Of a stretch of 20,869 nt of DNA, positions 8,909-17,400 are shown piece by piece (position 1 is the stretch's first letter; every line of letters begins with the position of its first letter). A model generated the notes under the pieces. It worked only from the letters and a program-made list of their open reading frames with translations. It was not told where the DNA came from and did no database searches. The stretch lies in sequence record NC_005830.1; one strand, given 5' to 3'. Both the position numbers and the translations under genes were made by a program.

Positions 8909-8940
8909 AAGTAGATATAAGAAAAAAGACTATATTACTT

Positions 8941-9153
8941 TTACACTCTGAGACCTACTCCAGCTAATAGACCTTTTAAGAACGTTCCTATTACTGGCAT
9001 ACTGAATATTAATCTGATTACTATGTATGCACCGATAAGGTCTCCGATTACAGAGCTGAATGAGTCTACTCCCTCGAGTATTCCAGTTGCTACGTCATAT
9101 GCTACTTGTAGTGCCTCATTTGCTAAGTTAGTTGCACTGCTTGTGGATGACAT
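8941..9153 (-). CDS. 70-aa hydrophobic membrane or structural protein; probable paralog of the 52-aa ORF at 17242-17400
   Basis: MSST start, amphipathic acidic N-terminus, ILEG motif, TM segment, TATA-like run at 9183-9191. Confidence 0.7.
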   Translation of the reverse strand: MSSTSSATNLANEALQVAYDVATGILEGVDSFSSVIGDLIGAYIVIRLIFSMPVIGTFLKGLLAGVGLRV

Positions 9154-9214
9154 GGCTGGTCTAAGTATAGTGTTGTCAGAAATATATATATACTTTAAGC
9201 TTCTATTTTTGATT

Positions 9215-9688
9215 GTGATAACAGAATCAATTCAAAACAAACTAGAAGACATTGTGAAAGAGTATAAGAAGAGAGGGATAGACTTAGGGATAATAACAAA
9301 TGTTGATGAGGTAAGCTTGTTTTTCGATACATCACAGTACGCAGAGGCAATAAAGAAGAAAGTAATAGAGATAGTAAGACAGTCAGGAACAGGAAGGGCA
9401 AAGATTGATTTTAAGACAAACGGGTATGTGATAAAATTTGCAATACAGAGAGGGTACTATAACAGGAACACAATAGAGAAGCTCAAAAGTCTAGTAGATT
9501 ACTTGCATGAACAGAAAATCAGATGCGGTTATGAGATTAAAGGTGACTTGATATTTGTCATGTCACTTACTGACTTCTTACAGAAAATCAGCGAGGATGT
9601 AAAAGAGAAACTGAAAGATGAAAGAGTTAAGATAGCATCAAAACAGGAATACACTAAGTACATAGTGGTGATAAAAGTTGAGCAGTAA
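9215..9688 (+). CDS. Hypothetical protein, about 157 aa (longest ORF 9023-9688, 221 aa)
   Basis: In-frame GTG at 9215 lies after a TATA-like region. The first 44 codons of the long ORF overlap the antisense 70-aa gene. Confidence 0.7.
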
Positions 9689-10091: not shown

Positions 10092-10473
10092 TAAAGTCTG
10101 CTATTTTTTGTGCTGTTTCTTGGCTTATTCCTGTTCTACTGGAAAATGCTGAAATCGCATTATTGATATACTCTGCAATCATATCACTAGAAGCACTACC
10201 AGCTTTCATTTTCAGATAACTCTTTAATAGTTTCTCACCGAAAGCTATGTACATTCCCCATTTTATATTGGGAATGCCATCAGTCTTGCAGATTTCTTTT
10301 ATCGCTAATCTGAGCTTATGGTACGGTGTAAATCCAGCTTCCCACTGTGCAGTCTGATTTGCTGTTACTGTTTCTGCCATCTCTGGCGGTACTATTCCAC
10401 CTATTGACCTATAGATATACTGTTTATATTGATACCTATCTTTTGAGTCTTGTCTGTATTTTTTATTCACCAT
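10075..10473 (-). CDS. Major capsid protein 1 (ORF132, SIRV2 fold)
   Basis: Basic N-terminus [14 protein letters not shown]; paralogous to ORF140. Confidence 0.95.
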
Positions 10474-10895
10474 TAGCTACCACCCCCCATTATAATAGGG
10501 ATTACTGCGTTATAAATTGCATCTAATACTGTCACATCTAGACCGTATACGTCGCTGTACTTTGACTCTAGGTCAGTCTTTGAGGCTTCATTTGCGGTAT
10601 TAGGGTCTGGTGAACTGTTCTTATTCTTCCAGACTTGATGTGCTAATTCTTCAGCAAATGCTATGTAACCGATATAGTCTTCTGTGGCAACTTTATTGGT
10701 CTTTAATATGTCTAGAGTCTCGTTTCTGACTTTTGACATCATGTCATTATACTGTTTCCAGTCTGCAGTAATTGATTCGGTTACAGATATTGCCATGTCT
10801 TCTGGTATCAATCCTCCTAGATTTCTCCATAAATACAGCTTGGTCTTATATCTGTCTGTAGAGTCTTGCCTTAGCTTCCTGTTTAGCTTAGCCAT
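10473..10895 (-). CDS. Major capsid protein 2 (ORF140, SIRV2 fold, amphipathic C-terminal helix)
   Basis: RKLRQDSTDRYKTK...LGGLIPEDMA aligns with [11 protein letters not shown]...[10 protein letters not shown] in ORF132; TAATG coupling. Confidence 0.95.
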   Translation of the reverse strand: MAKLNRKLRQDSTDRYKTKLYLWRNLGGLIPEDMAISVTESITADWKQYNDMMSKVRNETLDILKTNKVATEDYIGYIAFAEELAHQVWKNKNSSPDPNTANEASKTDLESKYSDVYGLDVTVLDAIYNAVIPIIMGGGS

Positions 10896-11053
10896 GGTGT
10901 CTCTAAGGTAAGTTAGCAGACTGGATATTTTATTTGTTTCGGAATACAGTGTTCACACATTCTGGTCAGTGTCCATATTTTCAGACTTATAGACTTTCAT
11001 AATATCTAAAAAACAGACATAATCTATATTAGACCGAATGTCTCAGATTTAAT

Positions 11054-17132: not shown

Positions 17133-17249
17133 ATGAGAAGAATAGAGATAGAGACAGAAAGGACTACAGTTATAAGGTTAGCAGGGAAAGAACTGAAAAG
17201 GAAAAGTTGGGAAACAAGGCATAGGAACCTAGTGATAAGACATGAGTAG
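17133..17249 (+). CDS. 38-aa Arg-rich peptide
   Basis: Strong GAGGTGA SD at 17122-17128; MRRIEIETERTTVIRLAGKELKRKSWETRHRNLVIRHE; overlaps the next start codon. Confidence 0.6.
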   Translation: MRRIEIETERTTVIRLAGKELKRKSWETRHRNLVIRHE

Positions 17250-17400
17250 CACCGCTAATGCAATAGCTGATGCGTTTCTAGGCGTACTTAATGCACTTGC
17301 ACCGATAATAGAAGGTGCAACTGAAATAATCACTTTCATGGCATTGACATACGTCATGACAATGGTAATAGCAAGAATATTAGGTGGGCTGTTTGTCTGA
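17242..17400 (+). CDS. 52-aa hydrophobic membrane or structural protein
   Basis: MSSTANAIADAFLGVLNALAPIIEGATEIITFMALTYVMTMVIARILGGLFV. Confidence 0.8.
   Translation: MSSTANAIADAFLGVLNALAPIIEGATEIITFMALTYVMTMVIARILGGLFV

Follow-up and report, generated by a model that had tools for sequence, protein, structure and literature searches.

The envelope of Acidianus filamentous virus 1 (AFV1) is unusually thin (about 2 nm) and has horseshoe lipids, and we know of no viral membrane protein for it. The viral DNA is fully wrapped by a heterodimer of ORF132 and ORF140 (PMC5517147), and the virion lumen contains a protein density that is unexplained (PMC5517147). Membrane proteins of the envelope have been described in other viruses: VP3 of SFV1 is a glycosylated virion-envelope protein with two membrane helices (PMC6105669), and VP3 of the tristromaviruses is a small envelope membrane protein (PMC7189273). 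The family that probably lies closest to the locus described here is phrog_9875, the 71-72-aa proteins of the betalipothrixviruses, with members in SIFV2 (gp38, 'conserved lipothrixviral protein'), AFV9 (ORF72), AFV3, AFV6, AFV7 and AFV8 (ORF71), SSFV3 (ORF23) and SIFV (AF440571.2 21032-21244, unannotated). Our literature search found no paper on AFV1 ORF221, on an AFV1 transcriptome or on the ORF71/72 family.

The window analysed here, a stretch of 20,869 bases, is the complete genome of AFV1 (Captovirus AFV1, AJ567472 / NC_005830; 100% identity). An initial annotation, made from the letters alone, had proposed a hidden antisense gene of 70 codons, called ORF70 below, within the 5' part of the annotated ORF221; the sequence features that it described (ORF70, ORF221, GTG 9215, the A/T run and ORF52) are all present at their positions. 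The two GenBank records, AJ567472 and NC_005830, both annotate ORF221 and carry no minus-strand annotation at 8941-9153, and the minus-strand frame overlaps the first 44 codons of ORF221 as annotated (Table 1). The exact ORF70 sequence was not found in a collection of 15 billion proteins, and its relatives there are solely gene calls from metagenomes, named 'hypothetical protein'. Our main reading, to which we give a probability of roughly 85%, is that ORF70 is real and ORF221 mis-started, that the ORF70 product is a small membrane protein, that the two genes share a promoter spacer and that ORF70 is a probable orthologue of phrog_9875.

Table 1. Positions of the features discussed, in AFV1 genome coordinates
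Feature	Position	Strand	Description
ORF70	8941..9153	(-)	Predicted protein-coding gene, unannotated; ATG 9153, stop TAA 8943-8941, 70 aa
Annotated ORF221	9023-9688	(+)	221 aa in record
N-terminal extension of ORF221, predicted spurious	9023..9214	(+)	64 codons; chance-open antisense shadow frame of ORF70
Corrected ORF221, predicted	9215..9688	(+)	157 aa, start GTG 9215
Divergent intergenic promoter region, predicted	9154..9214	both genes	61-bp spacer, conserved block 9176-9210
Spacer ORF70-ORF195	8909..8940	(-)	TATA-like octamer and T run, conserved in 8/8 genomes
ORF52 (phrog_28228)	17242-17400		52 aa

We compared the region with seven distinct AFV1-like genomes from hot-spring metagenomes (L002, L008, L009, L010, L012, L013 and L014), which were found with a word-index protein search, which gave AFV1-like relatives in hot springs only, followed by retrieval of the encoding contigs, and then aligned with AFV1; here they are 79-95% identical to it. 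The word-index search gave 70-aa homologues with 93-95% identity, and in the seven aligned relatives the identity of ORF70 is 86-94% at the amino acid level; the gene callers predict a 70-aa gene in relatives. No loci related to ORF70 or to the core of ORF221 were found in IMG/VR, and a tblastn search of ORF70 against the INPHARED phages returned AFV1 itself and chance matches in actinophages (E 3-5) only. The hidden gene of the initial annotation is well supported by this alignment, the minus-strand frame being intact in all seven relatives and the plus-strand extension not. Counting AFV1, ORF70 is open in eight of eight genomes, and variable sites within it number 19, 10 and 46 at codon positions 1, 2 and 3 (of 70 each), with a pN/pS of 0.174. 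On AFV1 codon usage, the minus frame is ahead by 6.2 bits within the overlap and by 12.6 bits overall, a smaller margin than is typical of genes in AFV1 (on average, 20 bits for 43 codons); a codon-usage value as far on the wrong side is seen in 3.9% of real-gene windows.

As the minus-strand frame is short, one could argue that it is untranslated and owes its conservation to a non-coding RNA or a DNA element. We consider this extremely improbable. The 19/10/46 distribution is a three-base periodicity of substitutions; the start and stop codons are kept in all eight genomes; no indel has occurred across 213 nt, though both of the spacers flanking the gene vary and one of them carries insertions of 48 and 12 nt; and, finally, the product resembles, at the protein level, a family from another virus family. 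A translated ORF70 is thus strongly preferred, and the question turns to what the plus strand encodes.

The 221-aa call had been suspected of being over-extended, and the relatives agree. The plus-strand extension is interrupted by in-frame stops, one or two each, in five of the seven (L010, L002, L009, L008 and L014), and the ATG at 9023 has turned into ATA in two (L010 and L002); the only start kept in all eight genomes is the codon at 9215, which is GTG in AFV1, L012, L010 and L002 and ATG in L009, L013, L008 and L014. Between 9155 and 9214, the variable sites are spread evenly over the codon positions of the plus frame (8/9/8), and the pN/pS of 0.88 is like that of non-coding DNA; from 9215 onward the plus frame is constrained, with a pN/pS of 0.19. 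Homologues of ORF221 have been called at 221, 229, 168 and 157 aa, the last of these in four protein clusters. Given the stops in the relatives, the lost ATG, the neutral evolution of 9155-9214 and the retained start at 9215, the true length of ORF221 is 157 aa. Both strands might still be coding in AFV1, with the 221-aa form a true, strain-specific long isoform overlapping ORF70: all 221 plus-strand codons are open in AFV1, L012 and L013, and the apparent pN/pS of the extension is 0.35. Such a low value is, however, expected where a shadow frame is wobble-matched to a constrained gene. The third codon positions of the two overlapping frames coincide, and this both leaves the antisense frame open in AFV1 and makes its pN/pS deceptively low, as in a classical shadow ORF. 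The stops, the missing ATGs and the neutral stretch speak against the long isoform too, as does the promoter evidence: upstream of 9023, no TATA was found at a fitting distance, and a TATA that is conserved would fall within the supposed coding region. We therefore regard dual coding as very improbable, if marginally less so than an untranslated ORF70. Taken as comparative sequence evidence, the alignment shows that the AFV1 reference is without a genuine minus-strand gene and that ORF221 is drawn 64 codons too long.

Some other irregularities of annotation were seen on the way. The 168-aa plus-strand calls of some relatives begin at an unconserved ATG within the TATA box (9182-9214, plus strand; peptide MYIYF...) and are probably over-extended as well. 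Homologues of the capsid protein ORF140 (10473-10895, minus strand) in L009, L011 and L012 are called at 167 or 175 aa versus 140 aa in AFV1, the differences in length being likely due to start-codon inconsistency among the AFV1-like genomes. The GenBank note of the plus-strand gene at 920-1492 reads 'ORF90' though the product is 190 aa, a typographical slip. The SIFV record is without the homologous 71-72-aa gene (our L021:1501-1716, equal to AF440571.2 21032-21244, plus strand), and its locus numbers skip from SIFV0041 to SIFV0043; the unannotated frame overlaps the annotated 5' end of the glycosyltransferase SIFV0041 by 61 nt, so the start of SIFV0041 may be over-extended too. The equivalent in SIFV2, gp38, is annotated. 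AFV9 ORF157a was considered as a counterpart of the corrected 157-aa protein and rejected, as the two have no similarity and the equal length beside a 70-aa ORF is coincidental.

The spacer between the two divergent genes has the features of a shared promoter region. A TATA-rich stretch had been pointed out between ATG 9153 on the minus strand and GTG 9215 on the plus strand; the block is indeed there and is conserved across the eight genomes. It is nearly invariant at 9176-9210, and the adjoining 9154-9175 varies. Within it, a run of alternating A and T at 9181-9193 includes a palindromic TATA, TATATATA, at about 9184-9191, flanked on the plus side by a BRE-like CAGAAAT. The octamer is located at -32..-25 of GTG 9215, a spacing that recurs in the leaderless-looking ORF274, ORF300, ORF116 and ORF224, and at -39..-32 of ATG 9153. 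The distance from TATA to the transcription start is usually about 26-27 nt in archaea, and with this distance, the single palindromic TATA would give a leaderless plus-strand transcript with a predicted start near 9214 and a minus-strand transcript with a predicted start near 9161, inside a conserved ACTTAGA. If one palindromic TATA truly drives both of the divergent genes, this could be an independent novelty.

The region upstream of the major capsid gene ORF140 (10896-10955, minus strand) is built in a similar manner, with a TATA at about -38..-30 and CTTAGA at -12..-7, and is kept in the relatives. The position of CTTAGA is exactly the same, -12..-7 from the ATG, in ORF140 and ORF70, again kept in the relatives; in the whole genome, the hexamer occurs 10 times, counting both strands. 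The two genes may share CTTAGA as a late-promoter or initiator element, and the likeness of the two upstream regions, a post-hoc observation, hints that ORF70 might be co-regulated with the capsid operon. At the other end of ORF70, the spacer towards ORF195 contains TAATATAG at 8937-8930 (minus strand), a candidate TATA spaced for a leaderless ORF195, and a run of six to eight T at 8927-8922 (minus strand) that follows the ORF70 stop and is a candidate oligo-T terminator for ORF70. In L013, the whole unit of TATA-like octamer and T run is tandemly duplicated (48 nt; region 1366-1397), and L014 has the 12-nt insertion within the spacer; as the spacer tolerates both, it appears to be non-coding and plastic. 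A scan for bacterial promoters and terminators found nothing, the model being bacterial and the virus archaeal.

AlphaFold2 (AF2) models ORF70 as essentially one long helix (helices at 3-51 and 53-66; pLDDT 72.6). Residues 1-37 are polar and acidic and residues 39-68 hydrophobic; the acidic residues are at 13, 20, 27, 30 and 38, and the basic ones, R47, K60 and R69, are confined to the C-terminal half. D38, R47 and K60 interrupt the hydrophobic stretch and make a classical transmembrane span uncertain. No signal peptide was found in ORF70, and a Foldseek search of its fold against PDB and BFVD (E<=10) gave no matches, a result that is uninformative for a single-helix model. With its polar, acidic N-terminal half and hydrophobic C-terminal half, ORF70 is most likely a small membrane protein anchored by its C terminus; read more widely, the architecture suggests a C-terminally anchored or an interfacial membrane protein.

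Profile comparisons link ORF70 to the betalipothrixvirus family, and do so in both directions. The sole PHROG match of AFV1 ORF70 is phrog_9875 (E 0.018, near full length); with the metagenomic relatives included, 10 of 10 members of the ORF70 family match it, and it is essentially the only PHROG matched consistently (best E 0.002 in 38,880 families; profile positions 11-67 of 72). Conversely, a profile built from six betalipothrixvirus sequences and run directly on AFV1 with hmmsearch, filters off, placed ORF70 first among the 155 AFV1 ORFs, with an E of 9.4e-4 against 0.29 for the next best and an ungapped alignment over residues 3-60. In five rudivirus and lipothrixvirus records, the phrog_9875 member was found in SIFV at 21032-21244 (E 6.5e-35), and the same ORF was the sole match of the ORF70 profile (E 0.013); tblastn recovered the phrog_9875 family from all betalipothrixviruses. 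The hhalign comparison of ORF70 with the betalipothrixvirus family gave a probability of 52% and a P of 1.4e-4, a score that none of 200 column shuffles reached, the reversed control remaining at 1%. In a language-model search, the nearest neighbours of ORF70 were clusters of 69-71 aa from Taleaviricota, with lead-level scores of 0.80-0.82.

The two families are alike in length (70-72 aa) and in starting with MS, and in each the N-terminal half is polar and helical and the C-terminal half hydrophobic. Each is the best profile match of the other, and they have D-L, K/R and S-x-P-x-x-G-x-F-L positions in common, D38/L39, R/K47, S51, P53, G56, F58 and L59 of ORF70 being aligned with D37/L38, K54, S58, P60, G63, F65 and L66. 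On the other hand, the identity is only about 39% over 36 aligned columns, the hydrophobic segment of ORF70 is eight residues shorter (two gaps of four residues), and its N-terminal half is acidic (four to five D/E), whereas that of the betalipothrixvirus proteins is uncharged and rich in Ser, Ala and Asn. The genomic settings show the same mixture. In both lineages, no more than about 3 kb separates the gene from the capsid genes and from a homologous GT4 glycosyltransferase (E 1e-22 to 1e-27); order and orientation differ, however, AFV1 having ORF70, ORF157, ORF137, the capsid genes ORF132 and ORF140 and the glycosyltransferase ORF313, and SIFV, SIFV2 and AFV9 having capsid or structural genes, the glycosyltransferase and ORF72. 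The betalipothrixvirus gene adjoins the pyramid-egress gene (SIFV gp43), a gene that AFV1 does not have.

The scores of the link are weak (12-16 bits), the proteins are short and hydrophobic and the alignments are shallow (Neff 1.1-1.5); in a control set of 14 cellular genomes, the phrog_9875 profile also found matches (E<=1) in 4. A search of 1.84 billion representatives with the ORF70 profile (hmmsearch, E<=0.001) did not recover the betalipothrixvirus family and returned only ORF70's own cluster and giant, repeat-rich proteins. In one of the latter, the metagenomic protein P0022 (4282 aa), a repeat (SASN[IL]DREVLTVAYDGSIG) occurs at least 17 times at a spacing of 42 residues and resembles residues 6-24 of ORF70 with 58% identity over 19 residues; the resemblance is probably coincidental, and we treated these giant proteins with their repeats of about 42 residues as a coincidence of composition or motif and not as kin of ORF70. 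A phrog_9875 match in AFV2 (E 0.002) was rejected as spurious, the matching 42-aa ORF being antisense to the annotated ORF107a. All in all, the family link is moderately supported, the membership of ORF70 in the phrog_9875 superfamily seems probable, and the distant orthologue of ORF70 in the betalipothrixviruses is probably the 71-72-aa 'conserved lipothrixviral protein'.

The initial annotation had looked for the kin of ORF70 elsewhere and paired it with ORF52, the two being paralogous, small, coat-like proteins with an architecture like that of pVIII or pilins and perhaps serving as envelope or end-cap components. There are grounds for the idea. ORF70 and ORF52 are the only 2 of 41 AFV1 proteins that start with MSST, and in both an amphipathic N-terminal stretch (muH about 0.4-0.46) is followed by a hydrophobic one; both have acidic residues in the amphipathic half and all basic residues in the hydrophobic C-terminal half (acidic residues of ORF52 at 10, 24 and 28, its sole basic residue at 45), and both are predicted as single long helices, that of ORF52 with a pLDDT of 87.1 in AF2. 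ORF52 is likewise encoded in the structural half of the genome, and in a language-model search its nearest named clusters were of the pVIII type (PF19199 and PF05356), at low scores of 0.76-0.79. The proposed architecture, with its acidic amphipathic N terminus, hydrophobic stretch and C-terminal basic residues, holds for both proteins; the resemblance between them does not rise above chance in standard tests. BLASTP aligned nothing between them, and the Smith-Waterman score was 29, shuffled sequences averaging 25.3 (p about 0.22). With the ORF70 HMM, ORF52 was 8th of the 155 AFV1 ORFs (E 2.3), behind junk ORFs, and with the ORF52 HMM, ORF70 was absent from the top 8; no ORF52 member matched phrog_9875, and hhalign of ORF52 with the betalipothrixvirus family gave 3.1%. 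The comparison of the two family alignments by hhalign, proposed originally as a check, yielded a probability of 3.2% and covered the first 15 N-terminal columns only; its score of 15.5 was reached by just 2 of 200 column shuffles, a faint residual signal that stems from the MSST...A..A..L.V N terminus common to both. Nor does the shared I(I/L)EG motif survive, as its E is not conserved among the relatives of either family (ILQG, IITG).

The membership of a coat or pilin class fares no better. Neither ORF70 nor ORF52 has a Pfam family at E<=1, coat families included, and ORF70 lacks both a hydrophobic class III signal at its N terminus and a fold match. An archaeal type IV pilin has a short basic leader followed by an N-terminal hydrophobic helix, and ORF70 is the opposite, with its hydrophobic segment C-terminal and its first 37 residues polar, acidic and free of basic residues. 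Like ORF70, the pVIII proteins of PF19199 and PF05356 are single helices, of about 50 residues, that are acidic at the N terminus, hydrophobic in the core and basic towards the C terminus; unlike them, ORF70 lacks a Pfam match, a signal peptide and a C-terminal lysine cluster, and the AFV1 genome is coated by unrelated capsid proteins with four-helix bundles. The pVIII resemblance is architectural only, and the ORF132/ORF140 heterodimer described above leaves the DNA already fully wrapped. ORF52 differs from ORF70 also in being 18 residues shorter, in having a single basic residue and in its Shine-Dalgarno-like context of the GGTGA type inside a putative claw operon, ORF70 having a predicted TATA promoter of its own. 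We find a paralogous pair of coat-like proteins unlikely and prefer to see ORF70 as a small membrane protein probably related to phrog_9875.

What such a protein would do is a matter of analogy. The VP3 proteins of SFV1 and the tristromaviruses are small, hydrophobic and encoded beside capsid and glycosyltransferase genes, as is ORF70; no sequence similarity to ORF70 was found, and sizes and topologies differ. The VP3 proteins provide a functional precedent for a possible role. ORF70 would be co-expressed with the structural genes and inserted into the membrane, where it could have a part in the viral envelope or in how the virus acquires it. We hold a role in the envelope, or in envelope acquisition or assembly at the host membrane, to be the likeliest, at nearly even odds, the main alternative being a function in the host membrane during infection. 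A bolder version combines these ideas: ORF70 and ORF71-72 could be a structural component, overlooked by proteomics, that the enveloped filamentous archaeal viruses share, in AFV1 an organiser or anchor of the envelope or the source of the density in the virion lumen. The proteins would then have escaped by being small, hydrophobic, poor in tryptic sites and unannotated in AFV1 and SIFV, and the hydrophobic runs of 8-12 residues between the charged residues would suit a thin envelope. From ORF70, trypsin would release just two peptides fit for use, residues 48-60 and 61-69. We think this bolder version rather unlikely as a whole. Whatever the role, ORF70 is in no database, and the published proteomic searches were unable to find it.

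Overall, the correction of the reference genome is useful and does not reveal a new kind of system. The shortening of ORF221 from 221 to 157 aa matters for anyone expressing that protein, the extra 64 residues being an artefact on our reading. If the link to phrog_9875 holds, ORF70 is one more gene common to the Ungulaviridae, to which AFV1 belongs, and Betalipothrixvirus. Among enveloped filamentous archaeal viruses, AFV1 serves as the structural reference, and the corrected map adds to it a conserved small protein, predicted to be membrane-bound, that makes a concrete candidate for the membrane component missing from AFV1.
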